A stretch of 64,000 nucleotides of DNA from Selaginella moellendorffii (Eukaryota; Plantae; Lycopodiophyta), in NCBI RefSeq assembly GCF_000143415.4, contig NW_003314262.1, positions 1,229,960-1,293,959 on the forward strand. The letters run 5' to 3'. Each line of letters begins with the position of its first letter. The stretch's first letter is position 1. Position numbers and translations under genes: made by a program. The notes below the pieces were generated by a model, which saw only the letters and a program-made list of their open reading frames with translations, searched no databases and was not told where the DNA came from. This document shows positions 4,669 to 54,304 of the stretch, piece by piece.

Positions 4669-4674
4669 GCGGCT

Positions 4675-9142: not shown

Positions 9143-9304
9143 AATGCTAATCCGTAGGAAGAGTTTTTCTTCCTGGCTAACTAGAGAACCTAACTGAAAC
9201 TCTGGAGAACTAGTTTACCGATAGAGAGAGTTTGAAGAGCTTGAAAACTTGTAATGTGGTTTTGGAAATTCTTGGTTATTGGTAGGCTCGTAAAGGCTCT
9301 GGGT

Positions 9305-9691
9305 TGTCAGGAATCCCCCAATTCTTGCCACATTCCTGACACTCGCCGGATTCCTGACCTGCAGACCACATTCCTCACTCTCGAGACACTTCCCTATTCC
9401 TGACTCTCAAGACACTTTCCTCTTCCTGACTCTCGAGACACTTCCCGATTCCTAAGTCTCGAGCCACATTCCTGATGATGATGTGGTGCCTCCTCGACCT
9501 CAGCTATATTTAGGCCGTCCTCGATCCAAGAGTGGTGGAGCTTCATCAACCTATAGTATATATAGGTTAGCCTTGTTCCATTTCTCCACAATCTGAATCA
9601 ACGTCAGTCTAAGGCCTCTTCTTTGTTTCCACTAGTTTTTCTCTTTGTCTTTTTGCATTTTCCAATCTTGATCTTGTCAGGGGTCTTGACA
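9305..9691 (+). repeat. 5' LTR, with internal ~27-bp TTCCTGACTCTCGAGACACTT repeats and TATA at 9557-9564
   Basis: Direct repeat of 14507-14892. Confidence 0.95.
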
Positions 9692-9693
9692 GT

Positions 9694-9708
9694 TTGATTC
9701 AGATTGTG
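9694..9708 (+). promoter_or_regulatory. Self-priming primer-binding site
   Basis: TTGATTCAGATTGTG is the exact 15-nt reverse complement of LTR 9587-9601 (CACAATCTGAATCAA). No TGG-initiated tRNA PBS. Confidence 0.85.
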
Positions 9709-9790
9709 TTTTTTCATTTTTTGATTTAGCTCGTTTTGATTGTTTGATTACCTTTGCCTTTTTTTCCCCCTTTTTCCTTTCTTCTTGCCA

Positions 9791-10762
9791 ATGGAGTCTC
9801 CAAGCCATCCTGATTTCTTTGCTGAAGTCCTTGCAAAAATCCAGTCTGAGAATACCGAGCTGAAGGCGACCCTTCTTTGCATGCAGCAGGAGCTTGCTTC
9901 ACTTTAGGCTCAAGGATTCAGCAAAGTTCCTGAACCGAAGGTGAGCTTCCCGGCGAAATTTTCAGGCAAGCGTTCGGAGCTTCGCGGATTCCTGAACCAG
10001 ATGGAGTTGATCTTCGCACTTCAACATCGGCGGTACCCTACTCCCGAGTCTCAAATCGGTGCGATTGGGACGTTGCTCGAAGGTGCAGCTTTGTCATGGT
10101 TTTCTACTCTTCTGGAGAAGAGCCTGAAAGGGGTCGTGGTTCCAGAGCTGATGGATCTTCAATTGTTCAAAGAGAAGCTCGAAGTTTGTTTTGGCGAGAC
10201 AGATCGGGTTCGGGCTGCTACCACAAAGATGAGACGTCTCTCTCAGGGGTCTCGTCCTGCCTCGATCTACGCTGCAGAGTTCCAACTCCTTGCTTTGGAC
10301 ACTCAGTGGGATGAGCGGGCCTTGATTGACCAATTTAGTTTCGGCCTCAACAGCGGTGTCAAGGATTTATTGCTCACCATGGAGGATCCCAAGGACTTGT
10401 CGGATGCCATCAACAAAGCTGTTTGATGTGACAATCGTCTCTTTGAACGTCGTCAGGAAAGTCGCCGCGCCGCTGTTTTTCCGTCCCAGACTCAGGAATC
10501 CCAGCTTGAGTCTTCAGGGCATACTCCTGAACCTACTGCTCTAGTTCCGATGAATATTTCTGGTACTCCCCGACTCATTAGAGGGAAGTTGAGTCCTGCT
10601 GAGAAGCAACGTCGAATATCTCATAATCTTTGCCTCTATTGTGCTGATCCTAATCACAATGCAGCTGTATGTCCCAAGAAGCCTCCTCGACTGCTCGAGT
10701 TCACTCTGCCTCAAAGTCCACCTCTATTGCAGTCGGGAAACGACCCTGTCCAAACAGAGTAG
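9791..10762 (+). pseudogene. gag: Retrotransposon Gag with CCHC knuckle; two premature stops
   Basis: ATG 9791; PAKFSGKRSELRGFLNQ; CLYCADPNHNAAVC; TAG 9905 and TGA 10424. Confidence 0.9.
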
Positions 10763-10784
10763 GAGCTGTTTGTTTGGACTCCCC
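10735..10784 (+). other. -1 ribosomal frameshift signal: G GGA AAC plus downstream stem or pseudoknot
   Basis: Heptamer 10735-10741 is correctly phased in gag, and pol is in the -1 frame. Stem GTCCAAACA (10748-10756) / TGTTTGGAC (10771-10779) starts 6 nt downstream. Confidence 0.8.
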
Positions 10785-13700
10785 GAATAAAAATCACTTT
10801 TCTTCTTTATCAAGCTCCTCACCACCTTTCATCAAAGCCACCACCAATTCCCGCAACTTCTGCGTCCCATGTCTCCTTTTTTTCACCGGACAATCAGGAC
10901 TCAAGGCTCTGGCATTACTGGACTCGGGTGCAACTTCCTGCTTCATGGACACGAACTTTGCTACCCGACATTACGTTCCTCTTTCTCCTACCATACGGGA
11001 TTTTAGGGTTGAAGGCATCGGCGGGCATTTTGTGTCTCCATCTTCTAGACTTAGGGAAACGTTGCCCGTTCGAGTACACATCGGGTCCACCGTCACCGAT
11101 ATCACCTTCAACATCATCAACAACAAGTCCTCCTCTGTGGTGCTCGGTCTTCCTTGGTTCCAACTACATCAGCCTCAGATCTGTTGGAAGGAATTACAGC
11201 TCATCTCTCCCACGGCTTCCCCTGCTGTTCATCGAGTCCGAATCAGAAAAAGTTCCCTAATCTCAAATCGGGGTTCTGTTCCTGACTCTATAAAGTTTTC
11301 ACCCTCTTCTTTTTCCTCTCTTCCATCTTACACTGGACCGTATCCTCGTCTCATCATTCCATTTAGTCGTACGCCTCCTCCTATCTCCACAATCACTATG
11401 AAAGAACTCCTTCATGAAGAACCTCTTTTTCTTTTTGCTTTGCATGTTTCTCCTGTCAGTCTTTCTGAGAAGTATCATGATTTTGGGGATGTGTTTGACA
11501 AGAAAAAAAGCTAGTGTACTACCTGTTCATCGGCCTTATGATTGTCCCATTGATTTACAGGAAGGAGCGTCACCTCCGTGGGGGCCTATCTACGGGTTAT
11601 CCCCGTCTGAGCTTAAGGCCCTCAAAGAGTACGTGGGTGAGAACCTTGCCTCGGGCTACATTCAGCATTCGCAGTCCCCGGCTGGAGCGCCTGTCTTCTT
11701 TGTCAAGAAGAAGGATGGGAGCTTGCGGCTAGTCATCGACTACCGAGGTTTGAACAAGGTGACTGTTCGGAACTGTTATCCGCTGCCCCTGATCTCGAAC
11801 CTGTTGGAACGCCTCGGCGGTGCCCACTTCTTCACCAAGATCGACCTCCGTGGAGCATACAACCTGATCCGGATCCGGCCTGGTGATGAATGGAAGACTG
11901 CATTCCGAACCCGCTATGGCCACTTCGAGTACATTGTCATGCCATTTGGCTTGACAAATGCTCCAGCAGTTTTCCAACACATGGCGAACGACGTCTTTCG
12001 GGAGTTTCTTGATCAGATGGTGATTGTCTATCTCGATGACATCCTCATCTACTCAAAAACTCAGGAGGAGCATGACGAACATGTTCGCAAGGTGCTAGCG
12101 AAGTTGCAAGAACACGGCCTATACGCGAAGCTTGAGAAATGTTCCTTTGATCGGCAGTCTGTGGAGTTCCTTGGGTACATTGTCACTCCTGAGGGTATCA
12201 CGATGGATCCTGCCAAAGTCAAGACTATTCTCGACTGGGAGCCTCCACAATCAATGTCGGACGTTCAGGTTTTCCTTGGCTTCGCCAACTTCTACTGCAA
12301 ATTCATTGATCACTACTCTGACATTGTCCTTCCTCTCACACATCTCACTCGCAAGGATGTTCCCTTCTCTTGGTCTGCTGCTGCCCAGCAGGCCTTCGAC
12401 ACACTCAAGGCGGCCTTCAGTTCTGCTCCTGTCTTGATCCATGCTGATTCCTCACAACCTTTCTTCATTGAGGCTGACGCCTCCGACTTTGCCATTGGTG
12501 TTGTGCTGTCTCAACTCGGAGCGGATCACGATCTTCATCCGGTCGCTTTCCATTCTCAGAAATTCCAGCCTGCGGAGATCAATTACGAAATCCACAACAA
12601 GGAGCTCCTTGCCATCGTGGATTCCTTTGGAGAGTGGCGCCGTTTCTTGGAGGGGGCGAGCCATCAAACAACAGTCTGGACGGATCACAAAAATCTCGAG
12701 TACTTTGCCACTTCCCGAGTTTTAAGCCGTCGTCAAGCAAGGTGGGCACAATTCCTGAGTCGGTTTGACTTTGTTATCAAGTACAGACCTGGAAAGTTTC
12801 AAGGCCTTCCTGATGCTCTTTCAAGGCGCTCGTATCTCAGTCTCAGGCCTGGTAATCCTACCTTTGATCAACAGGATCAAGTTATCCTCGGTCCTGATCG
12901 GCTTCAAGTTATGGCAATTTCCTTGGCCCCTTAGGACTCCTCCTTGATGGATGCAATCAGAAACGATCTTCAATCCGATGATCTCGCTAGCAACATTTTC
13001 CCCCATCTTCAGGCTGGACACCCAGTGACTCCCGACTGCCGGTGATTTGACGAGTTCGAGTTCTTAGATGGCTTATTGTACCGTGGGGAGCAGCTTTACG
13101 TTCCTGAAGGTGATGCTCGAAGGTTGGTCCTGATGGCGTGCCACGATAGCCCGACTGCTGGTCACTTCGGCATTGCGAAAACCTATGAGCTAGTTGCACG
13201 GGACTTTTGGTGGCCTCACATGGACGACTACATCAAAGCTTTTGTTACCTCTTGTGACACTTGTGCCCGGAATAAGGTACCTCGCCACCTTCCTTCAGGT
13301 TTGCTTCGTTCCCTTCCAGTCCCTTCAGGTCCTTGGGAATCCATCTCCATGGATTTCTTGAGTGATCTTCTGAGTTCTGGAGGCTTCAACAGCATTTTAG
13401 GTCATGGTGGATCGCTTCACAAAGATGGCGCACTTCTTGCCATGTACCAAGGAGTTTTCGGGCGAGGACATGGCAAAACTGGTATTCAGGGAAATTTTCC
13501 GACTTCATGGGATTCCTACAGATGTGGTTTCGGATCGGGGGCCTCAGTTCATCTCTCATTTCTGGCAATAGTTTTTGCAACTACTTGGAGTGAAGGCCAA
13601 CCTCTCTTCGGCATATCATCCTCAAACTGATGGGCAGTCTGAGCGAACGATTCAGACGTTGGAACAATTCTTGAGGTGCTTCATCAACTATCATCAGGAT

Positions 13701-14495
13701 AACTAGTTCGATATCCTTCCCCTTGCTGAGTTCTCCTATAACAACTCTGTTCACTCCTCTCTTCGAGTTTCCCCCTTCTTTGCAAACTCTGGCCAAAATC
13801 CCCGATTCAATCTCTCACTTCCTTCTCCATCTGAATCCTCTCGTTCAAATCCCCGTTATAAGGCATTTATCTCCAACATCCAAGAAATCCACAACTCCAT
13901 CTCCTTCCACCTCCATCGTGCTCAGGAATTTCATAAAACATTTGCCAATGTCCATCGTCAGGATTGTCCCCCTTACAATATCGGGGATAAAGTCTGGCTC
14001 CTCAGGCAAAATATCTCCACCACCAGGCCCTGTCCAAAACTTGATTTCAAATGCCTTGGTCCTTTCCTTATCACTGCCATCATTAATCCTGTCACTTATC
14101 ACCTTGCACTTCCCTCCTCATATCAAATTCACCCCGTTTTTCACTCCTCTCTCCTTGAGCCTTATATTCCCAGTCCTATTCCAAATCAGGTCATTCCTCC
14201 GCCTCCACCAGTGCAGCTCGAGGATGGGTCTGAGTACGAGGTTCAGGACATCCTTGATTCCAAGATTTCACGGTCTAAACTCTACTATCTGGTGGACTGG
14301 AAGGGTTACAGACCTGAGGAACGCACTTGGGAACCTGCAGACAACCTGCTTCATTCTCCTGACCTTGTTCAGGACTTCCACCGCCACTATCCTTCTCGTC
14401 CCAGTCCTCATTCTTTTTCTCCATTTCCCATCCCTCGCCACTCATCTACTCCTCCTCTTCGTTCTCGTTCACATCCTCGTTCCACTTGTTCTTGA
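10741..14495 (+). pseudogene. pol: Pol polyprotein (protease, RT, RNase H, integrase, chromodomain) with stops and frameshifts
   Basis: LLDSGA protease; RT with YLDD; RNase H ADASDFAIG...TDHKNL; integrase H-H-CDTC and SISMDF; chromodomain EYEVQDILDS...YLVDWKGY...TWEP. Frameshifts at the A-run ~11505 and ~13398; TAG 12932. Confidence 0.92.
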
Positions 14496-14506
14496 GGAGG
14501 GGGTGC

Positions 14507-14892
14507 TGTCAGGAATCCCCCAATTCTTGCTACATTCCTGACTCTCGCCGGATTCCTGACCTGCAGACCACATTCCTGACTTCGAGACACTTCCCTATTC
14601 CTGACTCTCGAGACACTTTCCTATTCCTGACTCTCGAGACACTTTCCGATTCCTGAGTCTCGAGCCACATTCCTGATGATGATGTGGCGCCTCCTCGACC
14701 TCAGCTATATTTAGGCCGTCCTCGATCCAAGAGCGGTGGAGCTTCATCAACCTATAGTATATATAGGTTAGCCTTGTTCCATTTCTCCACAATCTGAATC
14801 AACGCCAATCTAAGGCTTCTTCTTTGTTTCCACTAGCTTTTCTCTTTGTCTTTTTGCATTTTCCAATCTTGATCTTGTCAGGGGTCTTGACA
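14507..14892 (+). repeat. 3' LTR
   Basis: Direct repeat of 9305-9691; about 13 substitutions and 3 single-base indels by hand alignment. Confidence 0.95.
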
Positions 14893-15746
14893 TGGGTGAA
14901 CCAGATGATAACCTTTAGTGTATGAGCTCCACAGATCTCATACACCCTCTTCTCCGACCACGAGTCGGGAGCTGTGGCACTTGCTGCTATGCGCTTGGCG
15001 ACGAGGATTGACAGGAATGCCTTGGCGTTCTTTTCACCAAGGTGCCCCACACCAACTGGCTTCCACTGCTCAACGTCTATGTGACTCTGGAACCACTGCC
15101 GAAAAAAGTCGTCGCAGGTGGACATAATCACAACCCCAGTCCGGTCCTGCTTGATCATGGCTGTGAAACATCCCAGGAGGGTGCCTACATCCTGGTCGGA
15201 CCACCACTTCAGCCTGTCAGCTTCATCGATGACAAAAATTGGCCTCCTATGCTGGTTTTCAACCGCCAGGCTCATAAACTAACTCATGACAGAGCCCAAG
15301 TCCTTCACTAGCTCCGCTTTTAACAGCTCTAGAAAGCTCGATGCATCAAGGTTTACGCCCTTGAACGTCAGCTTCTTCAAATCGACACTGACACCTCCGA
15401 TCGTCTTCAGAAAGGCTGCTGCCACATCTTTGAGCCAAGAAGCCCAAGCTCGCATCTGTCTTGCAATCTGTGCAGCAGCCAGCTCCGGAGAACTGAAGTC
15501 CGCAGCCCTCATGTCCATGTAGAAGAGTGGCAACTGGGCTTTCAGCAGAGGGTTGGCATCCCACATCTTCCTGAGCTGCTTGAGCAGAGCGGACTTGCCT
15601 GAATTGTTGGCGCCTATCACTACAGCGATGCGGTTGAAGCCTTCCTCAATATGTGTGAGCAGATCAGTTATCTCTTCGTGCCTATCAAAGAAACCCTCAT
15701 CGTTGTTGAGCGACTTCTTCAGCTCCCTCACCGCTTTAGCCGCCAT
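14893..15746 (-). pseudogene. Array unit 1, truncated ATPase; internal stop, tail split by the LTR element
   Basis: ORFs 15279..15755 and 14799..15275; tail resumes at 9215-9304. Confidence 0.8.
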
Positions 15747-16015
15747 AGCCGCCAAACCCTAAAATGTATTAAACCTAAAATCGCCCGTTACGTGGTACCA
15801 ATTTGGTACCGGAGAGACTAATTGACTGTTTTAATTTTCTTTAGTTTATTTTCAAATAGATGAACTGTGAGATGGGACGTCAACTCAAAACATGTTGGAA
15901 GATCCAGATTCCCTGCTGGCTACAAGTTGTTGTATGCCAAACGAATGCTAATCCGTAGGAAGAGTTTTTCTTCCTGGCTAACTAGAGAACCTAACTGAAA
16001 CTCTGGAGAACTAGT

Positions 16016-16879
16016 TTACCAATAAAGAGAGTTTGAAGAGCTTGAAAACCTGTAATGTGGTTTTGGAAATTCTTGGTTATTGGTAGGCTCGTAAAGGCTC
16101 TGGGTGAACCAGATGATAACCTTTAGTGTATGAGCTCCACAGATCTCATACACCCTCTTCTCCGACCACGAGTCGGGAGCTGTGGCACATGCTGCTATGC
16201 GCTTGGCGACGAGGCTTGAAAGGAATGCCTTGGCGTTCTTTTCACCAAGGTGCCCCACACCAACTGGCTTCCACTGCTCAATGTCTGTGTGACTCTGGAA
16301 CCACTGCCCAAAAAAGTCGTTGCAGGTGGACATAATCACAAACCCAGTCCGGTCCTGCTTGGTCATGGCTGTCAAACATCCCAGGAGGGTGCCTACATCC
16401 TGCTCGGACCACTGCTTCAGCCTGTCAGCTTCATCGATGACAAAAATTGGCCTCCTATGCTGGTTTTCAGCCGCCAGGCTCATAAACCAACTCATGACAG
16501 AGCCCAAGTCCTTCACTGGCTCCGCTTTTAACAGCTCTAGAAAGCTCGATGCATCAAGGTTTACGCCCTTGAATGTCAGCTTCTTCAGATCGACACTGAC
16601 ACCTCCGATCGTCTTCAGAAGGGCCGCTGCCACATCTTTGAGCCAAGAAGCCCAAGCTCGCATCTGTCCTGCAATCTGTGCAGTAGCCAGCTCCGGGGAA
16701 CTGAAGTCCACAGCCCTCATGTCCATGTAGAAGAGCGGCAACTGGGCTTTCAGCGGAGGGTTGGCATCCCACATCTTCCTGAGCTGCTTGAGCAGAGCAA
16801 ACTTGCCTGAATTGTTGGGGCCTATCACTACAGCGATGCGGTTGAAGCCTTCCTCAATATGTGTGAGCAGATCAGTCAT
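16016..16879 (-). CDS. Array unit 2, truncated P-loop ATPase (287 aa, Walker A GKF)
   Basis: Open from the internal ATG (MTDLL); expression unknown. Confidence 0.5.
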   Translation of the reverse strand: MTDLLTHIEEGFNRIAVVIGPNNSGKFALLKQLRKMWDANPPLKAQLPLFYMDMRAVDFSSPELATAQIAGQMRAWASWLKDVAAALLKTIGGVSVDLKKLTFKGVNLDASSFLELLKAEPVKDLGSVMSWFMSLAAENQHRRPIFVIDEADRLKQWSEQDVGTLLGCLTAMTKQDRTGFVIMSTCNDFFGQWFQSHTDIEQWKPVGVGHLGEKNAKAFLSSLVAKRIAACATAPDSWSEKRVYEICGAHTLKVIIWFTQSLYEPTNNQEFPKPHYRFSSSSNSLYW

Positions 16880-17255
16880 CTCTTCGTGCCCATCAAAGAA
16901 GAAATGACTGATCGTCGTCGTTGAGCGACTTCTTCGTCATCATCATTGAGCGACTTCTTCAGCTCCCTCACCGCTTCAGCCACCATAGCCGCCAAACCCT
17001 AAAATGTGTTAAACCTAAAGTCGCCCGTTACGTGGTTCCAATTTGGTATCAGAGAGACTAGTTGACTGTTTTAATTTTCTTTAGTTTATTTTCAAACAGA
17101 TGAACTGCGAGATGGGACGTCAACTCAAAACATGTTGGAAGATCCAGATTCCTTGCTGGCTACAAGTTGTTGTAAGCTAAATGAATGCTAATCCATAGGA
17201 AGAGTTTTTCTTCCTGGCTAACTAGAGAACCTAACTGAAACTCTGGAGAACTAAT

Positions 17256-18116
17256 TTACCGATAGAGAAAGTTTGAAGAGCTTGAAAACCTGTAATGTGG
17301 TTTTGGAAATTCTTGGTTATTGGTAGGCTTGTAAAGGCTCTGGGTGAACCAGATAACCTTTAGTGTATGAGCTCCATAGATCTCATACACCCTCTGCTCC
17401 GACCACGAGTCAGGAGCTGTGGCACTTGCTGCTATGCGCTTGGCAACGAGGCTTGACAGGAATGCCTTGGCGTTTTTTTCACCAAGGTCCCCCACACCAA
17501 CTGGCTGCCACTGCTCAACGTCTGCGTGACTCTGGAACCACTGCCAAAAAAAGTCGTCGCAGGTGGACATAATCACAACCCCAGTCCAGTCTTGCTTGGT
17601 CATGGCTGGGAAACATCCCAGGAGGGTGCCTACATCCTGGTCGGACCACCGCTTCAGCCTGTCAGCTTCATCGATGACAAAAATTGGCCTCCTATGCTGG
17701 TTTTCAGCCGCTAGGCTCATAAACCAACTCATGACAGAGCCCAAGTCCTTCACTGGCTCCGCTTTTAACAGCTCTAGAAAGCTCGATGCATCAAGGTTTA
17801 CGCCCTTGAACGTCAGCTTCTTCAGATTGACATTGACACCTCCGATCGTCTTCAGAAGGGCCGCTGCCACATCTTTGAGCCAAGAAGCCCAAGCTCGCAT
17901 CTGTCTTGCAATCTGTGCAGCAGCCAGCTCCGGGGAACTGAAGTCCGCAGCCCTCATGTCCATGTAGAAGAGCGGCAACTGGGCTTTCAGCAGAGGGTTG
18001 GCATCCCACATCTTCCTGAGCTGCTTGAGCAGAGCAGACTTGCCTGAATTGTTGGGGCCTATCACTACAGCGATGCAGTTGAAGCTTTCCTCAATATGTG
18101 TGAGCAGATCAGTCAT
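17256..18116 (-). CDS. Array unit 3, truncated P-loop ATPase (286 aa)
   Basis: Open ORF, Walker A/B intact. Confidence 0.55.
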   Translation of the reverse strand: MTDLLTHIEESFNCIAVVIGPNNSGKSALLKQLRKMWDANPLLKAQLPLFYMDMRAADFSSPELAAAQIARQMRAWASWLKDVAAALLKTIGGVNVNLKKLTFKGVNLDASSFLELLKAEPVKDLGSVMSWFMSLAAENQHRRPIFVIDEADRLKRWSDQDVGTLLGCFPAMTKQDWTGVVIMSTCDDFFWQWFQSHADVEQWQPVGVGDLGEKNAKAFLSSLVAKRIAASATAPDSWSEQRVYEIYGAHTLKVIWFTQSLYKPTNNQEFPKPHYRFSSSSNFLYR

Positions 18117-18492
18117 CTCTTCGTGCCTATCAAAGAAGAAATGACTGATCGTCGTCGTTGAGCGACTTCTTCGTCATCATCATTGAGCGACTTCTTCAGC
18201 TCCCTCACCGCTTCAGCCACCATAGCCGCCAAACCCTAAAATGTGTTAAACCTAAAGTCTCCCGTTACGTTGTTCCAATTTGGTATCAGAGAGACTAGTT
18301 GACTGTTTTAATTTTCTTTAGTTTATTTTCAAACAGATGAGCTGTGAAATGGGACATCAACTCAAAACATGTTGGAAGATCCAGATTCCTTGCTGGCTAC
18401 AAGTTGTTGTAAGCTAAACAAATGCTAATCTGTAGGAAGAGTTTTTCTTCCTGGCTAACTAGAGAACCTAACTGAAACTCTGGAGAACTAAT

Positions 18493-19343
18493 TTACCGAT
18501 AGAGAGAGTTTGAAGAGCTTGAAAACCTGTAATGTGGGTTTGGAAATTCTTGGTTATTGGTAGGCTTGTAAAGGCTCTGGGTTAACCAGATAACCTTTAG
18601 TGTATGAGCTCCATAGATCTCATACACCCTCTGCTCCGACCACGAGTCGGGAGCTGTGGCACTTGCTGCTATGCGCTTGGCAACGAGGCTTGACAGGAAT
18701 GCCTTGGCGTTCTTTTCACCAAGGTGCCCCACACCAACTGGCTGCCACTGCTCAACGTCTGCGTGACTCTGGAACCACTGCCAAAAAAAGTCGTCGCAGG
18801 TGGACATAATCACAACCCCAGTCCAGTCTTGCTTGGTCATGGCTGGGAAACATCCCAGGAGGGTGCCTACATCCTGGTCGGACCACCGCTTCAGCCTGTC
18901 AGCTTCATCGATGACAAAAATTGGCCTCCTATGCTGGTTTTCAGCCTCCAGGCTCATAAACTAACTCATGACAAAGCCCAAGTCCTTCACTGGCTCCGCT
19001 TTTAACAGCTCTAGAAAGCTCGATGCATCAAGGTTTACGCCCTTGAATGTCAGCTTCTTGAGATCTACACTGACACCTTCGATCGTCTTCAGAAGGGCCG
19101 CTGCCACATCTTTGAGCCAAGAAGCCCAAGCTCGCATCTGTCTTGCAATCTGTGCAGCAGCCAGCTCCGGGGAACTGAAGTCCGCAGCCCTCATGTCCAT
19201 GTAGAAGAGCGGCAACTGGGCTTTCAGCAGAGGGTTGGCATCCCACATCTTCCTGAGCTGCTTGAGCAGAGCAAACTTGCCTGGCCTATCACTACAGCGA
19301 TGCGGTTGAAGCCTTCCTCAATATGTGTGAGCAGATCAGTCAT
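18493..19343 (-). pseudogene. Array unit 4; 10-bp deletion through Walker A and an internal stop
   Basis: Deletion at ~19283; TAG at 18961. Confidence 0.8.
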
Positions 19344-39050: not shown

Positions 39051-39319
39051 AGCCGCCAAACCCTAAAATCTGTTAAACCTAAAGTCGCCCGTTACGTGGT
39101 ACCAATTTGGTACCAGAGAGACTAGTTGACTGTTTTAATTTTCCTTAGTTTATTTTCAAACAGATGAACTGCGAGATGGGACTTCAACTCAAAACATGTT
39201 GGAAGATCCAAATTCCTTGCTGGCTACAAGTTGTTGTAAGCTAAATGAATGCTAATCCGTAGGAAGAGTTTTTCTTCCTGGCTAACTAGAGAACCTAACT
39301 GAAACTCTGGAGAACTAAT

Positions 39320-43891: not shown

Positions 43892-44267
43892 CTCTTCGTG
43901 CCTATCAAAGAAGAAATGACTGATCGTCGTCGTTGAGCGACTTCTTCGTCATCATCATTGAGCGACTTCTTCAGCTCCCTCACCGCTTCAGCCACCATAG
44001 CCGCCAAACCCTAAAATGTGTTAAACCTAAAGTCGCCCGTTACGTGGTTCCAATTTGGTATCAGAGAGACTAGTTGACTTTTTTTATTTTTTTTAGTTTA
44101 TTTTCAAACAGATGAGCTGTGAAATGGGACATCAACTCAAAACATGTTGGAAGATCCAGATTCCTTGCTGGCTACAAGTTGTTGTAAGCTAAACAAATGC
44201 TCATCTGTAGGAAGAGTTTTTCTTCCTGGCTAACTAGAGAACCTGACTGAAACTCTGGATAACTAAT

Positions 44268-45128
44268 TTACCGATAGAGAGATTTTGAAGAGCTTGAAAA
44301 CCTGTAATGTGGGTTTGGAAATTCTTGGTTATTGGTAGGCTCGTAAAGGCTCTGGGTGAACCAGATAACCTTTAGTGTATGAGCTCCACAGATCTCATAC
44401 ACCCTCTGCTCCGACCACGAGTCGGGAGCTGTGGCACTTGCTGCTATGCGCTTGGCAACGAGGCTTGACAGGAATGCCTTGGCGTTCTTTTCACCAAGGT
44501 GCCCCACACCAACTGGCTGCCACTGCTCAACGTCTGCGTTACTCTGGAACCACTGCCAAAAATAGTCGTCGCAGGTGGACATAATCACAACCCCAGTCCA
44601 GTCTTGCTTGGTCATGGCTGGGAAACATCCCAGGAGGGTGCCTACATCCTGGTCGGACCACCGCTTCAGCCTGTCAACTTCATCGATGACAAAAATTGGC
44701 CTCCTATGCTGGTTTTCAGCCGCTAGGCTCATAAACCAACTCATGACAGAGCCCAAGTCCTTCACTGGCTCCGCTTTTAACAGCTCTAGAAAGCTCGATG
44801 CATCAAGGTTTACGCCCTTGAACGTCAGCTTCTTCAGATTGACACTGACACCTCCGATCGTCTTCAGAAGGGCCGCTGCCACATCTTTGAGCCAAGAAGC
44901 CCAAGCTCGCATCTGTCTTGCTATCTGTGCAGCAGCCAGCTCCGGGGAACTGAAGTCCGCAGCCCTCATGTCCATGTAGAAGAGCGGCAACTGGGCTTTC
45001 AGCAGAGGGTTGGCATCCCACATCTTCCTGAGCTGCTTGAGCAGAGCAGACTTGCCTGAATTGTTGGGTCCTATCACTACAGCGATGCAGTTGAAGCTTT
45101 CCTCAATATGTGTGAGCAGATCAGTCAT
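44268..45128 (-). CDS. Array unit 25, truncated ATPase (286 aa)
   Basis: Open ORF. Confidence 0.55.
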   Translation of the reverse strand: MTDLLTHIEESFNCIAVVIGPNNSGKSALLKQLRKMWDANPLLKAQLPLFYMDMRAADFSSPELAAAQIARQMRAWASWLKDVAAALLKTIGGVSVNLKKLTFKGVNLDASSFLELLKAEPVKDLGSVMSWFMSLAAENQHRRPIFVIDEVDRLKRWSDQDVGTLLGCFPAMTKQDWTGVVIMSTCDDYFWQWFQSNADVEQWQPVGVGHLGEKNAKAFLSSLVAKRIAASATAPDSWSEQRVYEICGAHTLKVIWFTQSLYEPTNNQEFPNPHYRFSSSSKSLYR

Positions 45129-45504
45129 CTCTTCGTGCCTATCAAAGAAGAAATGACTGATCGTCGTCGTTGAGCGACTTCTTCGTCATCATCATTGAGC
45201 GACTTCTTCAGCTCCCTCACCGCTTCAGCCGCCATAGCCGCCAAACCCTAAAATGTGTTAAACCTAAAGTCGCCCGTTACGTGGTACCAATTTGGTACCA
45301 GAGAGACTAGTTGACTGTTTTAATTTTCCTTAGTTTATTTTCAAACAGATGAACTGCGAGATGGGACGTCAACTCAAAACATGTTGGAAGATCCAGATTC
45401 CTTGCTGGCTACAAGTTGTTGTAAGCTAAATGAATGCTAATCCTTAGGAAGAGTTTTTCTTCCTGGCTAACTAGAGAACCTAACTGAAACTCTGGAGAAC
45501 TAAT

Positions 45505-46365
45505 TTACCGATAGAGAGAGTTTGAAGGGCTTGAAAACCTGTAATGTGGGTTTGGAAATTCTTGGTTATTGGTAGGCTTGTAAAGGCTCTGGGTGAACCA
45601 GATAACCTTTAGTGTATGAGCTCCATAGATCTCATACACCCTCTGCTCCGACCACGAGTCGGGAGCTGTGGCACTTGCTGCTATGCGCTTGGCGACGAGG
45701 CTTGACAGGAATGCCTTGGCGTTCTTTTCACCAAGGTGCCCCACACCAACTGGCTGCCACTGCTCAACGTCTGCGTTACTCTGGAACCACTGCCAAAAAT
45801 AGTCGTCGCAGGTGGACATAATCACAACCCCAGTCCAGTCTTGCTTGGTCATGGCTGGGAAACATCCCAGGAGGGTGCCTACATCCTGGTCGGACCACCG
45901 CTTCAGCCTGTCAGCTTCATCGATGACAAAAATTGGCCTCCTATGCTGGATTTCAGCCGCTAAGCTCATAAACTAACTCATGACAGAGCCCAAGTCCTTC
46001 ACTGGCTCCGCTTTTAACAGCTCTAGAAAGCTCGATGCATCAAGGTTTACGCCCTTGAACGTCAGCTTCTTCAGATTGACACTGACACCTCCGATCGTCT
46101 TCAGAAGGGCCGCTGCCACATCTTTGAGCCAAGAAGCCCAAGCTCGCATCTGTCTTGCAATCTGTGCAGCAGCCAGCTCCGGGGAACTGAAGTCCGCAGC
46201 CCTCATGTCCATGTAGAAGAGCGGCAACTGGGCTTTCAGCAGAGGGTTGGCATCCCACATCTTCCTGAGCTGCTTGAGCAGAGCAGACTTGCCTGAATTG
46301 TTGGGGCCTATCACTACAGCGATGCAGTTGAAGCCTTCCTCAATATGTGTGAGCAGATCAGTCAT
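45505..46365 (-). pseudogene. Array unit 26; internal W>stop
   Basis: TAG at 45973. Confidence 0.75.
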
Positions 46366-46741
46366 CTCTTCGTGCCTATCAAAGAAGAAATGACTGATCG
46401 TCGTCGTTGAGCGACTTCTTCGTCATCATCATTGAGCGACTTCTTCAGCTCCCTCACCGCTTCAGCCACCATAGCCGCCAAACCCTAAAATGTGTTAAAC
46501 CTAAAGTCACCCGTTACGTGGTTCCAATTTGGTACCAGAGAGACTAGTTGACTGTTTTAATTTTCCTTAGTTTATTTTCAAACAGATGAACTGCGAGATG
46601 GGACGTCAACTCAAAACATGTTGGAAGATCCAGATTCCTTGCTGGCTACAAGTTGTTGTAAGCTAAATGAATGCTAATCCGTAGGAAGAGTTTTTCTTCC
46701 TGGCTAACTAGAGAACCTAACTGAAACTCTGGAGAACTAAT

Positions 46742-47602
46742 TTACCGATAGAGAGAGTTTGAAGAGCTTGAAAACCTGTAATGTGGGTTTGGAAATTCTT
46801 GGTTATTGGTAGGCTCGTAAAGGCTCTGGGTGAACCAGATAACCTTTAGTGTATGAGCTCCACAGATCTCATACACCCTCTGCTCCGACCACGAGTCGGG
46901 AGCTGTGGCACTTGCTGCTATGCGCTTGGCAACGAGGCTTGACAGGAATGCCTTGGCGTTCTTTTCACCAAGGTGCCCCACACCAACTGGCTGCCACTGC
47001 TCAACGTCTGTGTTACTCTGGAACCACTGCCAAAAATAGTCGTCGCAGGTGGACATAATCACAACCCCAGTCCAGTCTTGCTTGGTCATGGCTGGGAAAC
47101 ATCCCAGGAGGGTGCCTACATCCTGGTCGGACCACCGCTTCAGCCTGTCAGCTTCATCGATGACAAAAATTGGCCTCCTATGCTGGTTTTCAGCCGCTAG
47201 GCTCATAAACCAACTCATGACAGAGCCCAAGTCCTTCACTGGCTCCGCTTTTAACAGCTCTAGAAAGCTCGATGCATCAAGGTTTACGCCCTTGAACGTC
47301 AGCTTCTTCAGATTGACATTGACACCTCCGATCGTCTTCAGAAGGGCCGCTGCCACATCTTTGAGCCAAGAAGCCCAAGCTCGCATCTGTCTTGCAATCT
47401 GTGCAGCAGCCAGCTCCGGGGAACTGAAGTCCGCAGCCCTCATGTCCATGTAGAAGAGCGGCAACTGGGCTTTCAGCAGAGGGTTGGCATCCCACATCTT
47501 CCTGAGCTGCTTGAGCAGAGCAGACTTGCCTGAATTGTTGGGGCCTATCACTACAGCGATGCAGTTGAAGCTTTCCTCAATATGTGTGAGCAGATCAGTC
47601 AT
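46742..47602 (-). CDS. Array unit 27, truncated ATPase (286 aa)
   Basis: Open ORF. Confidence 0.55.
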   Translation of the reverse strand: MTDLLTHIEESFNCIAVVIGPNNSGKSALLKQLRKMWDANPLLKAQLPLFYMDMRAADFSSPELAAAQIARQMRAWASWLKDVAAALLKTIGGVNVNLKKLTFKGVNLDASSFLELLKAEPVKDLGSVMSWFMSLAAENQHRRPIFVIDEADRLKRWSDQDVGTLLGCFPAMTKQDWTGVVIMSTCDDYFWQWFQSNTDVEQWQPVGVGHLGEKNAKAFLSSLVAKRIAASATAPDSWSEQRVYEICGAHTLKVIWFTQSLYEPTNNQEFPNPHYRFSSSSNSLYR

Positions 47603-47978
47603 CTCTTCGTGCCTATCAAAGAAGAAATGACTGATCGTCGTCGTTGAGCGACTTCTTCGTCATCATCATTGAGCGACTTCTTCAGCTCCCTCACCGCTTC
47701 AGCCGCCATAGCCGCCAAACCCTAAAATGTGTTAAACCTAAAGTCGCCCGTTACGTGGTACCAATTTGGTACCAGAGAGACTAGTTGACTGTTTTAATTT
47801 TCCTTAGTTTATTTTCAAACAGATGAACTGCGAGATGGGACGTCAACTCAAAACATGTTGGAAGATCCAGATTCCTTGCTGGCTACAAGTTGTTGTAAGC
47901 TAAATGAATGCTAATCCGTAGGAAGAGTTTTTCTTCCTGGCTAACTAGAGAACCTAACTGAAACTCTAGAGAACTAAT

Positions 47979-48839
47979 TTACTGATAGAGAGAGTTTGAA
48001 GAGCTTGAAAACCTGTAATGTGGGTTTGGAAATTCTTGGTTATTGGTAGGCTTGTAAAGGCTCTGGGTGAACCAGATAACCTTTAGTGTATGAGCTCCAT
48101 AGATCTCATACACCCTCTGCTCCGACCACGAGTCGGGAGCTGTGGCACTTGCTGCTATGCGCTTGGCAACGAGGCTTGACAGGAATGCCTTGGCGTTCTT
48201 TTCACCAAGGTGCCCCACACCAACTGGCTGCCACTGCTCAACGTCTGCGTGACTCTGGAACCACTGCCAAAAAAAGTCGTCGCAGGTGGACATAATCACA
48301 ACCCCAGTCCAGTCTTGCTTGGTCATGGCTGGGAAACATCCCAGGAGGGTGCCTACATCCTGGTCGGACCACCGCTTCAGCCTGTCAGCTTCATCGATGA
48401 CAAAAATTGGCCTCCTATGCTGGTTTTCAGCCGCTAGGCTCATAAACCAACTCATGACAGAGCCCAAGTCCTTCACTGGCTCCGCTTTTAACAGCTCTAG
48501 AAAGCTCGATGCATCAAGGTTTACGCCCTTGAACGTCAGCTTCTTCAGATTGACACTGACACCTCCGATCGTCTTCAGAAGGGCCGCTGCCACATCTTTG
48601 AGCCAAGAAGCCCAAGCTCGCATCTGTCTTGCAATCTGTGCAGCAGCCAGCTCCGGGGAACTGAAGTCCGCAGCCCTCATGTCCATGTAGAAGAGCGGCA
48701 ACTGGGCTTTCAGCAGAGGGTTGGCATCCCACATCTTCCTGAGCTGCTTGAGCAGAGCAGACTTGCCTGAATTGTTGGGGCCTATCACTACAGCGATGCA
48801 GTTGAAGCCTTCCTCAATATGTGTGAGCAGATCAGTCAT
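47979..48839 (-). CDS. Array unit 28, truncated ATPase (286 aa)
   Basis: Open ORF. Confidence 0.55.
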   Translation of the reverse strand: MTDLLTHIEEGFNCIAVVIGPNNSGKSALLKQLRKMWDANPLLKAQLPLFYMDMRAADFSSPELAAAQIARQMRAWASWLKDVAAALLKTIGGVSVNLKKLTFKGVNLDASSFLELLKAEPVKDLGSVMSWFMSLAAENQHRRPIFVIDEADRLKRWSDQDVGTLLGCFPAMTKQDWTGVVIMSTCDDFFWQWFQSHADVEQWQPVGVGHLGEKNAKAFLSSLVAKRIAASATAPDSWSEQRVYEIYGAHTLKVIWFTQSLYKPTNNQEFPNPHYRFSSSSNSLYQ

Positions 48840-49215
48840 CTCTTCGTGCCTATCAAAGAAGAAATGACTGATCGTCGTCGTTGAGCGACTTCTTCGTCAT
48901 CATCATTGAGCGAATTCTTCAGCTCCCTCACCGCTTCAGCCACCATAGCTGCCAAACCCTAAAATGTGTTAAACCTAAAGTCGCCCGTTACGTGGTTCCA
49001 ATTTGGTATCAGAGAGACTAGTTGACTGTTTTAATTTTCTTTAGTTTATTTTCAAACAGATGAGCTATGAAATGGGACATCAACTCAAAACATGTTGGAA
49101 GATCCAGATTCCTTGCTGGCTACAAGTTGTTGTAAGCTAAACAAATGCTAATCTGTAGGAAGAGTTTTTCTTCCTGGCTAACTAGAGAACCTGACTGAAA
49201 CTCTGGAGAACTAAT

Positions 49216-50076
49216 TTACCGATAGAGAGAGTTTGAAGAGCTTGAAAACCTGTAATGTGGGTTTGGAAATTCTTGGTTATTGGTAGGCTCATAAAGGCTC
49301 TGGGTGAACCAGATAACCTTTAGTGTATGAGCTCCACAGATCTCATACACCCTCTGCTCCGACCACGAGTCGGGAGCTGTGGCACTTGCTGCTATGCGCT
49401 TGGCGACGAGGCTTGACAGGAATGCCTTGGCGTTCTTTTCACCAAGGTGCCCCACACCAACTGGCTTCCACTGCTCAACGTCTGTGTGACTCTGGAACCA
49501 CTGCCAAAAAAAGTCGTCGCAGGTAGACATAATCACAACCCCAGTCCGGTCCTGCTTGGTGATGGCTATGAAACATCCCAGAAGGGTGCCTACATCCTGG
49601 TCGGACCACCGCTTTAGCCTATCAGCTTCATCGATGACAAAAATTGGCCTCCTATGCTGGTTTTCAGCCTCCAGGCTCATAAACCAACTCATGACAAAGC
49701 CCAAGTCCTTCACTAGCTCCGCTTTTAACAGCTCTAGAAAGCTCGATGCATCAAGGTTTACGCCCTTGAATGTCAGCTTCTTGAGATCGACACTGACACC
49801 TCCGATCGTCTTCAGAAGGGCCGCTGCCACATCTTTGAGCCAAGAAGCCCAAGCTCGCATCTGTCTTGCAATCTGTGCAGCAGCCAGCTCCGGAGAACTG
49901 AAGTCCGCAGCCCTCATGTCCATGTAGAAGAGCGGCAACTGGGCTTTCAGCAGAGGGTTGGCATCCCACATCTTCCTGAGCTGCTTGAGCAGAGCAGACT
50001 TGCCTGAATTGTTGGGGCCTATCACTACAGCGATGCAGTTGAAGCTTTCCTCAATATGTGTGAGCAGATCAGTCAT
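49216..50076 (-). CDS. Array unit 29, truncated ATPase (286 aa)
   Basis: Open ORF. Confidence 0.55.
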   Translation of the reverse strand: MTDLLTHIEESFNCIAVVIGPNNSGKSALLKQLRKMWDANPLLKAQLPLFYMDMRAADFSSPELAAAQIARQMRAWASWLKDVAAALLKTIGGVSVDLKKLTFKGVNLDASSFLELLKAELVKDLGFVMSWFMSLEAENQHRRPIFVIDEADRLKRWSDQDVGTLLGCFIAITKQDRTGVVIMSTCDDFFWQWFQSHTDVEQWKPVGVGHLGEKNAKAFLSSLVAKRIAASATAPDSWSEQRVYEICGAHTLKVIWFTQSLYEPTNNQEFPNPHYRFSSSSNSLYR

Positions 50077-50452
50077 CTCTTCGTGCCTATCAAAGAAGAA
50101 ATGACTGATCGTCGTCGTTGAGCGACTTCTTCGTCATCATCATTGAGCGACTTCTTCAGCTCCCTCACCGCTTCAGCCACCATAGCCGCCAAACCCTAAA
50201 ATGTGTTAAACCTAAAGTCGCCCGTTACGTGGTACCAATTTGGTACCAGAGAGACTAGTTGACTGTTTTAATTTTCCTTAGTTTATTTTCAAACAGATGA
50301 GCTGTGAAATGGGACATCAACTCAAAACATGTTGGAAGATCCAGATTCCTTGCTGGCTACAAGTTGTTGTAAGCTAAATGATTGCTAATCCATAGGAAGA
50401 GTTTTTCTTCCTGGCTAACTAGAGAACCTAACTGAAACTCTGGAGAACTAAT

Positions 50453-51313
50453 TTACCGATAGAGAGAGTTTGAAGAGCTTGAAAACCTGTAATGTGGTTT
50501 TGGAAATTCTTGGTTATTGGTAGGCTCGTAAAGGCTCTGGGTGAACCAGATAACCTTTAGTGTATGAGCTCCACAGATCTCATACACCCTCTGCTCCGAC
50601 CACGAGTCGGGAGCTGTGGCACTTGCTGCTATGCGCTTGGCGACGAGGCTTGACAGGAATGCCTTGGCGTTCTTTTCACCAAGGTGCCCCACACCAACTG
50701 GCTGCCACTGCTCAACGTCTGCGTGACTCTGGAACCACTGCCAAAAAAAGTCGTTGCAGGTGGACATAATCACAACCCCAGTCCAGTCTTGCTTGGTCAT
50801 GGCTGGGAAACATCCCAGGAGGGTGCCTACATCCTGGTCGGACCACCGCTTCAGCCTGTCAGCTTCATCGATGACAAAAATTGGCCTCCTATGCTAGTTT
50901 TCAGCCGCTAGGCTCATAAACCAACTCATGACAGAGCCCAAGTCCTTCACTGGCTCCGCTTTTAACAGCTCTAGAAAGCTCGATGCATCAAGGTTTACGC
51001 CCTTGAACGTCAGCTTCTTCAGATCGACACTGACACCTCCGATCGTCTTCAGAAGGGCCGCTGCCACATCTTTGAGCCAAGAAGCCCAAGCTCGCATCTG
51101 TTTTGCAATCTGTGCAGCAGCCAGCTCCGGGGAACTAAAGTCTGCAGCCCTCATGTCCATGTAGAAGAGCGGCAACTGGGCTTTCAGTAGAGGGCTAGCA
51201 TCCCACATCTTCCTAAGCTGCTTGAGCAGAGCAGACTTGCCTGAATTGTTGGGGCCTATCACTACAGTGATGTTGTTGAAGCCTTCCTCAATATGTGTGA
51301 GCAGATCAGTCAT
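50453..51313 (-). pseudogene. Array unit 30 (1262-bp type); Q>stop
   Basis: TAG at 50894; triplicated 25-bp motif at the 5' end. Confidence 0.75.
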
Positions 51314-51714
51314 CTCTTCGTGCCTATCAAAGAAGAGATGACTGATCGTCGTCGTTGAGCGACTTCTTCATCGTCGTCGTTGAGCGACTTCTTCGTCGTC
51401 ATCATTGAGCGACTTCTTCAGCTCCCTCACCGCTTCAGCCACCATAGCCGCCAAACCCTAAAATGTGTTAAACCTAAAGTCGCCCGTTACGTGGTTCCAA
51501 TTTGGTACCGGAGAGACTAGTTGACTGTTTTAATTTTCTTTAGTTTATTTTCAAACAGATGAGCTGTGAAATGGGACATCAACTCAAAACATGTTGGAAG
51601 ATCCAGATTCCTTGCTGGCTACAAGTTGTTGTAAGCTAAACAAATGCTAATCTGTAGGAAGAGTTTTTCTTCCTGGCTAACTAGAGAACCTAACTGAAAC
51701 TCTAGAGAACTAGT

Positions 51715-52650
51715 TTACCGATAGAGAGAGTTTGAAGAGCTTGAAAACCTGTAATGTGGGTTTGGAAATTCTTGGTTATTGGTAGGCTCATAAAGGCTCT
51801 GGGTGAACCAGATAACCTTTAGTGTATGAGCTCCACAGATCTCATACACCCTCTGCTCCGACCACGAGTCGGGAGCTGTGGCACTTGCTGCTATGCGCTT
51901 GGCGACGAGGCTTGACAGGAATGCCTTGGCGTTCTTTTCACCAAGGTGCCCCACACCAACTGGCTTCCACTGCTCAACGTCTGTGTGACTCTTGAACCAC
52001 TGCCAAAAAAAGTCGTCGCAGGTAGACATAATCACAACCCCAGTCCGGTCCTGCTTGGTGATGGCTATGAAACATCCCAGAAGGGTGCCTACATCCTGGT
52101 CGGACCACCGCTTTAGCCTATCAGCTTCATCGATGACAAAAATTGGCCTCCTATGCTGGTTTTCAGCCTCCAGGCTCATAAACCAACTCATGACAAAGCC
52201 CAAGTCCTTCACTAGCTCCGCTTTTAACAGCTCTAGAAAGCTCGATGCATCAAGGTTTACGCCCTTGAATGTCAGCTTCTTGAGATCGACACTGACACCT
52301 CCGATCGTCTTCAGAAGGGCCGCTGCCACATCTTTGAGCCAAGAAGCCCAAGCTCGCATCTGTCTTGCAATCTGTGCAGCAGCCAGCTCCGGAGAACTGA
52401 AGTCCGCAGCCCTCATGTCCATGTAGAAGAGCGGCAACTGGGCTTTCAGCAGAGGGTTGGCATCCCACATCTTCCTGAGCTGCTTGAGCAGAGCAGACTT
52501 GCCTGAATTGTTGGGGCCTATCACTACAGCGATGCGGTTGAAGCCTTCCTCAATATGTGTGAGCAGATCAGTCATCTCTTCGTGCCTATCAATGAAACCC
52601 TCGTCGTCGTTGAGCGACTTCTTCAGCTCCCTCACCGCTTCAGCCGCCAT
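51715..52650 (-). CDS. Array unit 31, longest form (311 aa)
   Basis: Native ATG, motifs intact. Confidence 0.65.
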   Translation of the reverse strand: MAAEAVRELKKSLNDDEGFIDRHEEMTDLLTHIEEGFNRIAVVIGPNNSGKSALLKQLRKMWDANPLLKAQLPLFYMDMRAADFSSPELAAAQIARQMRAWASWLKDVAAALLKTIGGVSVDLKKLTFKGVNLDASSFLELLKAELVKDLGFVMSWFMSLEAENQHRRPIFVIDEADRLKRWSDQDVGTLLGCFIAITKQDRTGVVIMSTCDDFFWQWFKSHTDVEQWKPVGVGHLGEKNAKAFLSSLVAKRIAASATAPDSWSEQRVYEICGAHTLKVIWFTQSLYEPTNNQEFPNPHYRFSSSSNSLYR

Positions 52651-52919
52651 AGCCGCCAAACCCTAAAATGTGTTAAACCTAAAGTCGCCCGTTACGTGGT
52701 ACCAATTTGGTACCAGAGAGACTAGTTGACTGTTTTAATTTTCCTTAGTTTATTTTCAAACAGATGAACTGCGAGATGGGACGTCAACTCAAAACATGTT
52801 GGAAGATCCAGATTCCTTGCTGGCTACAAGTTGTTGTAAGCTAAATGATTGCTAATCCGTAGGAAGAGTTTTTCTTCCTGGCTAACTAGAGAACCTGACT
52901 GAAACTCTGGAGAACTAAT

Positions 52920-53780
52920 TTACCGATAGAGAGAGTTTGAAGAGCTTGAAAACCTGTAATGTGGGTTTGGAAATTCTTGGTTATTGGTAGGCTCGTAAAG
53001 GCTCTGGGTGAACCAGATAACCTTTAGTGTATGAGCTCCACAGATCTCATACACCCTCTGCTCCGACCACGAGTCGGGAGCTGTGGCACTTGCTGCTATG
53101 CGCTTGGCGACGAGGCTTGACAGGAATGCCTTGGCGTTCTTTTCACCAAGGTGCCCCACACCAACTGGCTGCCACTGCTCAACGTCTGCGTGACTCTGGA
53201 ACCACTGCCAAAAAAAGTCGTTGCAGGTGGACATAATCACAACCCCAGTCCAGTCTTGCTTGGTCATGGCTGGGAAACATCCCAGGAGGGTGCCTACATC
53301 CTGGTCGGACCACCGCTTCAGCCTGTCAGCTTCATCGATGACAAAAATTGGCCTCCTATGCTAGTTTTCAGCCGCTAGGCTCATAAACCAACTCATGACA
53401 GAGCCCAAGTCCTTCACTGGCTCCGCTTTTAACAGCTCTAGAAAGCTCGATGCATCAAGGTTTACGCCCTTGAACGTCAGCTTCTTCAGATCGACACTGA
53501 CACCTCCGATCGTCTTCAGAAGGGCCGCTGCCACATCTTTGAGCCAAGAAGCCCAAGTTCGCATCTGTTTTGCAATCTGTGCAGCAGCCAGCTCCGGGGA
53601 ACTAAAGTCTGCAGCCCTCATGTCCATGTAGAAGAGCGGCAACTGGGCTTTCAGTAGAGGGCTAGCATCCCACATCTTCCTAAGCTGCTTGAGCAGAGCA
53701 GACTTGCCTGAATTGTTGGGGCCTATCACTACAGCGATGTGGTTGAAGCCTTCCTCAATATGTGTGAGCAGATCAGTCAT
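52920..53780 (-). pseudogene. Array unit 32 (1262-bp type); Q>stop
   Basis: TAG at 53361. Confidence 0.75.
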
Positions 53781-54304
53781 CTCTTCGTGCCTATCAAAGA
53801 AGAGATGACTGATCGTCGTCGTTGAGCGACTTCTTCATCGTCGTCGTTGAGCGACTTCTTCGTCGTCATCATTGAGCGACTTCTTCAGCTCCCTCACCGC
53901 TTCAGCCACCATAGCCGCCAAACCCTAAAATGTGTTAAACCTAAAGTCGCCCGTTACGTGGTTCCAATTTGGTACCGGAGAGACCAGTTGACTGTTTTAA
54001 TTTTCTTTAGTTTATTTTCAAACAGATGAGCTGTGAAATGGGACATCAACTCAAAACATGTTGGAAGATCCAGATTCCTTGCTGGCTACAAGTTGTTGTA
54101 AGCTAAACAAATGCTAATCTGTAGGAAGAGTTTTTCTTCCTGGCTAACTAGAGAACCTAACTGAAACTCTAGAGAACTAGTTTACCAATAGAGAGAGTTT
54201 GAAGAGCTTGAAAACCTGTAATGTGGTTTTGGAAATTCTTGGTTATTGGTAGGCTCGTAAAGGCTCTGGGTGAACCAGATAACCTTTAGTGTATGAGCTC
54301 CACA

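Follow-up and report, generated by a model that had tools for sequence, protein, structure and literature searches.

We analyzed a 64,000-nucleotide stretch of the genome of the lycophyte Selaginella moellendorffii (positions 1,229,960 to 1,293,959 of contig NW_003314262.1, assembly GCF_000143415.4; hereafter, the window), which contains a tandem array of truncated copies of an ATPase gene. There are 32 complete head-to-tail units, as cut at the junction, and they occupy the minus strand between 54301 and 14931 (Table 1). The units are 1205, 1208, 1227, 1237, or 1262 bp long, and a scan with 20-mers gives a strong periodicity of 1237/1205 bp. Two units differ by 2.75% on average; the smallest difference is 0.55%, and no two units are identical. 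An initial annotation of this DNA had already described 32 head-to-tail copies of about 1.2 kb, and this count holds. Its range began at 9143, however, and so took in a 5.6-kb Ty3 element while leaving out the parent gene.

A unit of 1205 bp comprises the 389 bp that precede the start codon of the ATPase and the coding sequence up to codon 272/273 of the parent gene, which has 420 codons. The upstream part is plausibly a promoter. (A scan for bacterial promoters, which is not applicable to plant DNA, gave no match, and neither did a search of Rfam.) At the cut, the parent reads GAGATC-TGTGG-CGG; the upstream DNA reads GCAT-TGTGG-AGC; and the junction in the units reads GAGATC-TGTGG-AGC, so that codon 272/273 is fused to upstream DNA. 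Since TGTGG is present at both parent sites, it seems that a 5-bp microhomology seeded the duplication. The reading frame continues past the junction for 38 residues; both this tail and the truncation near codon 273 had been annotated correctly. The units have just four types of insertions or deletions relative to each other, and the three in coding sequence (32, 25, and 10 bp) are not multiples of three. The 32-bp insertion, after codon 17 or so, is present in 24 of the 32 units, two of which have another 25 bp.

Two side observations concern the junction. First, the DNA around the upstream TGTGG (6640-6760) folds better than shuffled sequences do (z = -3.2), with TGTGG paired in a hairpin; this was one of three stretches tested. 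Second, the 73-bp deletion in gene B, a duplicate of the parent, begins (at 7889) at the site that corresponds to the array junction (5487 in gene A) and ends at a second TGTGG. That both rearrangements have this breakpoint in common points to a fragile site or to a single event of complex repair.

The array originally led into its parent, gene A. The Ty3 element is inserted 38 bp into a 33rd unit, which resumes at 9304-9143 and then continues at 4477 (plus strand) into gene A. In a contig from a related organism (organism B), 4476 is followed by the sequence of 9142 downward, which is the join without the inversion. These joins imply that the array grew directly in front of its own parent and that gene A was split from it later, by the Ty3 insertion and the inversion. 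The substitution rates commonly used for plants are roughly 0.65-1.3e-8 per site per year, and with these rough rates, the divergence of the long terminal repeats (LTRs) of the Ty3 element puts the array at a minimum of 1.3-2.7 million years old. Genes A and B are both pseudogenes. The initial annotation considered both to be full-length copies with stops; the stops are there, but gene B is shortened by two deletions. We also noticed that the 162-bp piece of the 33rd unit matches 6718-6879 perfectly, although A and B differ by 5%. With the Ty3 insertion on one side of this piece and the inversion breakpoint on the other, a recent gene conversion between the now-inverted copies seems likely.

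Table 1. Features at the array locus, in positions of the window
Feature	Position	Strand	Remarks
Inverted segment	4477..9142	.	Reverses the orientation of genes A and B with respect to the array
Gene A	4675..5937	+	The array's parent and its terminal copy; 420 codons, of which 181 and 200 are stops; G50S in Walker A
Intergenic spacer	5938..6687	+	Second copy at 54302-55054 (-), 4.3% different, in front of the array
Gene B	7077..8252	+	Older duplicate of the whole gene; codons 93 and 266 are stops; 73-bp deletion from the array junction site; 14-bp deletion
33rd unit, next 162 bp	9143..9304	-	Ends at the inversion breakpoint; 100% identical to 6718-6879
Ty3/gypsy LTR retrotransposon	9305..14892	+	Gag, protease, reverse transcriptase, RNase H, integrase; inserted in the 33rd unit; 5-bp target duplication
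LTRs of the Ty3 element	9305-9691 and 14507-14892		Kimura two-parameter distance 0.035
33rd (terminal) unit, first 38 bp	14893..14930	-	Up to the Ty3 insertion
Tandem array	14931..54301	-	32 complete units, each 389 bp of upstream DNA and about 272 ATPase codons
283-residue reading frame	32110..32961	-	Natural ATG; FIDR
311-residue reading frame	34468..35403	-	Natural ATG; FIDR for FFDR; unit 17 of the initial annotation; Pfam ATPase_2, 45.9 bits (cut-off 33.2)
283-residue reading frame	36994..37845	-	Natural ATG; FIDR; Walker A S52F
311-residue reading frame	38115..39050	-	Natural ATG; FIDR; unit 20 of the initial annotation
311-residue reading frame	51715..52650	-	Natural ATG; FIDR; unit 31 of the initial annotation
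113-bp remnant	55012..55124	-	3' end of the gene; heads the spacer in front of the array

Reading frames in the units

The ATPase core is open in 22 of the 32 units, as had been reported, and is broken outright in the other 10. However, just five units are open from the natural ATG, which has G at both -3 and +4. The other 17 have the 32-bp insertion and are open only from an internal methionine (Met26). In units with this insertion, the natural ATG begins a frame of 36 codons that stops on Met26; in two of these units, the frame has 25 codons. Three of the five natural-start units encode the 311-residue form, and these are the same three units that were originally singled out.

If the truncated ATPase were made in quantity, it might act as a decoy or as a dominant-negative subunit, as first proposed. 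The 22 open units, of which five can be read from the natural start and 17 from Met26, would suit this proposal, but the commonest type of unit is frameshifted. Furthermore, the FFDR motif of gene A has become FIDR in all five natural-start units, and products that begin at Met26 lack the FFxR motif, which is conserved in the family.

The Walker A motif GPNNSGKS is exact in 28 units, so most units do keep it, and both flanking genes do have GPNNSSKS, as annotated. This difference (Gly50Ser) is due to one G-to-A change at a CHG site that is common to genes A and B; the gene of organism B has glycine. Because a single mutation accounts for both flanking genes, the array has kept the ancestral state, and the contrast is no sign of selection on the array.

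Sequence evolution of the units

Of 193 variants among the units, 70% are transitions. C-to-T variants are found at 52% of CG sites, 24% of CHG sites, and 8% of CHH sites. The ratio of observed to expected CpG is 0.56 in the array and 0.67 in the Ty3 element, versus 0.94 and 1.07 in neighboring genes. Selaginella methylates repeats and not gene bodies (PMC6073778), so this spectrum implies that the array has behaved as methylated repeat DNA, and we infer that it is methylated.

To compare the variants to neutral expectations, we used a model that keeps the type and context of each mutation. Neutrality was not rejected in four of five tests. In particular, synonymous variants were about as common as expected (46 versus 41.5, P = 0.22), and nonsynonymous changes struck codons that are conserved across the family as often as expected (11 versus 11.2). 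Even alanine 176, which is nearly invariant in the family, is altered in seven units, which also argues against the decoy, while the slight synonymous excess is in its favor. The view that the units drift close to neutrally mostly stands, with a weak residual that we describe below.

The units are recombinant mosaics: four-gamete incompatibility climbs with distance, from 0.21 to 0.47 (permutation P < 0.0005). The unit that adjoins the Ty3 element is the most divergent of all and the most similar to gene A. Both patterns are expected from unequal crossing-over. The units have also evolved in concert, as they differ less from each other than from gene A (4.5%) or gene B (5.5%).

We considered whether decay at CG and CHG sites is confined to the part of the gene that is shared with the array. 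This was not supported: the 3' part, which lies outside the unit, is at least as decayed (15 of 80 sites, versus 21 of 173 sites in the 5' part; P = 0.18). Since the decay extends beyond the unit, whole-gene duplication could explain the silencing equally well. As a side observation, the ATPase gene (4641-5988) differs from the contig of organism B by 6%, plus in-frame gaps, while exons of the neighboring BRWD gene differ by about 1%; part of the 6% is pseudogene decay, and the family may also evolve fast.

The ATPase family and its predicted fold

The 311-residue product belongs to the ATPase_2 family of Pfam (PF01637), which is STAND-like, as had been annotated; its score of 45.9 bits is well above the curated cut-off (33.2 bits). 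Across the family alignment, 48 of 50 members match ATPase_2. The parent and the family consensus share FFDR (FFxR), a Walker A motif of the form G-x4-G(S)KS, which is altered in gene A by G50S, and a Walker B motif, FVIDE (hhhhDE).

An exhaustive HMMER search, in which the 420-codon gene was represented by its separate open pieces only, found 73 relatives; the best is 35% identical. (A less sensitive homologue search with the 311-residue product gave no match, and a single-sequence search of the PDB was uninformative.) The named relatives are from S. moellendorffii itself (several paralogs), Adiantum, Chlorokybus, Klebsormidium, green algae, a glaucophyte, fungi, and one Chlamydiales bacterium. 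A quick tree places the protein from the window with the Selaginella, Adiantum, and Chlorokybus sequences, although not with strong support (91 by the Shimodaira-Hasegawa-like approximate likelihood ratio test). Two other loci of S. moellendorffii, L002 and L003, have neither neighbors in common with the window nor DNA that resembles it, so they are paralogs. The gene had been called prokaryote-like, but this description reflects just the name of the Pfam family, as its closest relatives come from Selaginella, ferns, streptophyte and green algae, and fungi. We therefore reject a recent transfer from prokaryotes.

The best matches for the family profile, and also for the predicted structure of the nearest full-length relative (P0001), are two archaeal proteins, SSO1545 (2FNA) and Paby2304 (2QEN) (E = 3e-14 with the profile), followed by the cores of NLR proteins and of Cdc6/Orc1. 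The predicted structure has a mean predicted local distance difference test (pLDDT) score of 89.7, and it can be aligned to 2QEN and 2FNA from end to end. Its Z scores against SSO1545 and Paby2304 are 21.0 and 20.7, with root-mean-square deviations of 5.4 and 5.6 over 325 and 316 residues, respectively. Nucleotide-binding, helical, and winged-helix domains are typical of this structural group (PMC4599002). By this likeness, the parent gene is predicted to encode the same three domains, and the 3' piece of gene A aligns with the corresponding part. The gene differs from the archaeal proteins in that it is only about 16% identical to them and falls, in the quick tree, in a plant group, and the product of the array retains just the first domain and part of the second.

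The array is cut at a conserved YxxCGG helix (YEICG, residue 273). Its product lacks the helices that match residues 277-313 of P0001 and everything that matches 325-415. According to the models, then, about half of the helical lid (two lid helices) and the entire winged helix are lost. In STAND proteins, the lid helices and the winged helix close over the nucleotide. In the model of the 311-residue product, the nucleotide-binding fold is confident up to about residue 230 (about 90), which would suit a decoy; beyond that, confidence falls to 65-78, and along the tail it drops from 66 to 34 (34-50 at the very end). The weak tail and the loss of two lid helices and the winged helix argue against a functional subunit.

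The initial annotation had also noted a tie to immune or conflict systems. Pfam scans found NTPase families only, with no effector or sensor domains, and the PADLOC matches cover only the P-loop region, with no full-length match and no immune domain. By comparison, NLRs and known STAND defense systems have an effector domain together with sensor repeats, or a full-length match to a defense model. An immune role for this family is only a matter of resemblance. We found nothing specific in the literature on the function of eukaryotic ATPase_2 proteins.

Transcripts and copy number in sequencing reads

We aligned four sequencing runs to 2200-6878 and required 88% likeness, so that reads of every copy are gathered. 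For transcription, we relied on two RNA libraries of organism A, which are from one study and possibly from another accession, and we used 12% of each run. The exon bins of the neighboring BRWD gene were covered at 58-157x. In contrast, the 272 codons that the units share with the gene had a mean depth of 0.6-0.7x, summed over all copies, and in both libraries there was zero depth on the 3' third of the gene and on the DNA that encodes the tail. No read in either library spanned the junction. A handful of reads, nearly all from the sense strand, have letters that are typical of the array and lack the private letters of organism B. It follows that the organism A plants probably carry the array and transcribe it at trace levels.

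Both the junction and a full-length partner are missing from these transcripts, most units are frameshifted near the start, and conserved codons are unprotected; we consider it very improbable that the array amplifies the dosage of a decoy or dominant-negative subunit. The other proposal of the initial annotation, a gene turning into a satellite, fits the near-neutral change, the near-silence, and the mosaic units. It had also stated that a lack of transcripts, neutral evolution, and methylation would point to a neutral satellite; this is largely what we found, with methylation read from the mutations only.

In organism B, a run that is probably RNA yielded a 1297-letter contig that spans the whole gene. 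Both stops are absent, Gly50 is present, and the gaps in the coding sequence (6, 12, and 6 bases) are all in frame. Judging from this contig, the gene of organism B is likely intact.

We also considered whether a few real copies were multiplied by the assembler. In a small run (of unrecorded type, with 3 million letters of contigs), the unit appears as a closed contig of 1267 letters that includes both joints, at a depth of 9, whereas the flanks, which are single-copy, are missing. The raw data therefore contain many copies of the unit. The sample of this run may be the one that was assembled, and we saw no long read that spans the array, which leaves some room for an artifact. However, no two units are identical, the transitions are enriched at CG and CHG sites, and the indels are of only four types. 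An assembly artifact is the least probable of the explanations that we considered.

Comparison with barley mlo-11 and other arrays

In the mlo-11 allele of barley, a tandem array of 5' regulatory DNA and the first five exons lies upstream of an intact Mlo gene (PMC4941727), with copy-number-dependent methylation and 24-nt small interfering RNA (siRNA) (PMC4941727, PMC7699567). mlo-11 is thus a precedent for this locus, contrary to the initial annotation, which knew of no such array in a plant. In both cases, the repeats are head to tail and join 5' upstream DNA (here, a putative promoter) to the 5' part of the coding sequence. Both arrays lie directly upstream of the full gene and on the same strand; here, this is the arrangement before the Ty3 insertion and the inversion. 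The repeats are methylated in mlo-11, by measurement, and probably here, judging by the mutations. On the other hand, mlo-11 has 2-12 nearly identical units instead of 32 that have diverged, its downstream gene is intact instead of a pseudogene that was split off, and its read-through RNA is measurable, while here few reads are of the array type and none cross the junction. Also, mlo-11 has a selected phenotype, which this locus is not known to have.

The locus also resembles satellites that arise by local tandem duplication, such as arrays derived from retrotransposons (PMC7004042, PMC3648361), which are reported to have kilobase monomers that can be traced to a parent, to be homogenized by recombination, and to be most divergent at the edge. 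It differs from them in that its parent is a cellular protein-coding gene, which can still be seen along with the seed junction and a likely intact relative. Our search for literature on gene-derived satellites in plants found nothing specific.

In dosage arrays, such as the amplifications of EPSPS and of soybean Rhg1, each unit holds a complete, expressed gene. The array that we studied likewise consists of genic DNA that was amplified in tandem to many copies, but its units are truncated, mostly frameshifted, and nearly silent.

Overall, we estimate a probability of roughly 70% that the locus is a gene-derived macrosatellite with the layout of mlo-11 that is now silent and drifts nearly neutrally. 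We are about as confident that recombination and not selection drove the expansion, with the methylation and the order of events as we propose them. First, an intact, expressed, single-copy ATPase gene would have been duplicated whole to give A and B. Second, a microhomology-mediated partial duplication in front of A would have seeded the array. Third, unequal crossing-over and conversion would have expanded the array and spread the frameshifted variant to 24 of the 32 units. Finally, the repeats would have become methylated at CG and CHG sites and transcriptionally silent, and the whole locus would have decayed. The array may have helped to silence gene A in cis, as mlo-11 does for Mlo.

Several observations weigh against this explanation. 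Among variants that are present in at least two units, synonymous changes are more common than expected (30 of 64 versus 22.3, P = 0.025, uncorrected), although about half of this excess is from states that are also present in A or B. There are somewhat fewer stops than expected (3 versus 6.6, P = 0.09). The ratio of nonsynonymous to synonymous polymorphism (pN/pS) is 0.44, versus 0.61 from the mutation spectrum (95% range 0.38-0.95, P = 0.10); we rejected the naive ratio as proof of selection, as the mutation spectrum alone lowers it to 0.61. The weak synonymous excess may have been carried over from a functional parent, and mild selection is also possible. In addition, methylation is deduced from the mutation spectrum, the silence was seen in a fraction of two libraries whose accession may differ, and those libraries do include the handful of sense-strand reads.

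A more active role for the array would be a selected off switch of the mlo-11 type. Read-through RNA and 24-nt siRNA would have methylated and shut gene A in cis, and maybe intact alleles in trans, and a higher copy number would have been favored as loss of the ATPase became useful. The layout is shared with mlo-11, in which a higher copy number goes with more silencing, methylation, and 24-nt siRNA (PMC4941727, PMC7699567). The trace sense reads of the array type, the lack of a full-length transcript in organism A and its presence in organism B, and the placement of A and B opposite the array through the inversion would all be consistent with this idea. However, A and B already have stops, so the intact target in cis is gone. 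Also, the small RNAs of mlo-11 are absent from exons outside the repeat, while here the 3' part decays at least as much. A selected role as a silencer is possible, but overall we think that the off switch is unlikely. More doubtful still is its strongest form: an aged, independently evolved mlo-11 that is a source of siRNA tuned by copy number, that was selected for shutting off a STAND-like ATPase without a receptor, and that still silences intact alleles in trans.

Other features of the window

The inversion appears to split a transcribed unit: there is RNA on 4230-4476, which in organism B runs on into 9142 downward. Within 9142-8350 there is an open reading frame of 182 codons with no match in Pfam. 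Part of the spacer in front of the array (54713-54986) is repeated in direct orientation at 55478-55751 (274 bp, 95% identical).

The BRWD/PHIP-like gene is short by 5 bp (at 2388) and by 4 bp (at 2583) that most RNA reads carry, which puts about 65 codons out of frame before the frame is restored, with no stop. This could be a compensated double frameshift, a decayed allele, or an assembly error. The sequence at 3600-4240 is multi-copy, spliced, and well expressed; many read ends are loose there, and Pfam gives no match. Scrambled pieces of the BRWD exon and of 3369-4030, about 71-84% identical and in direct orientation, lie 60 kb away at 62064-63047. A PPR gene at 59647-61611 is broken over several reading frames.

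Implications

The locus does not demonstrate a new protein or a new mechanism. Instead, it is an unusually complete record of how a protein-coding gene gave rise to a satellite, with its seed junction, its parent, an expressed and likely intact relative, a datable insertion, and 32 resolved units all visible together. It also brings to attention a widespread eukaryotic family, ATPase_2, with several paralogs in Selaginella. Finally, the mlo-11 layout has arisen outside barley, and this locus may offer a view of such an allele much later in its life. If it were indeed an aged silencer of this kind, then a lycophyte would provide a second natural case, observed when its target had already decayed.

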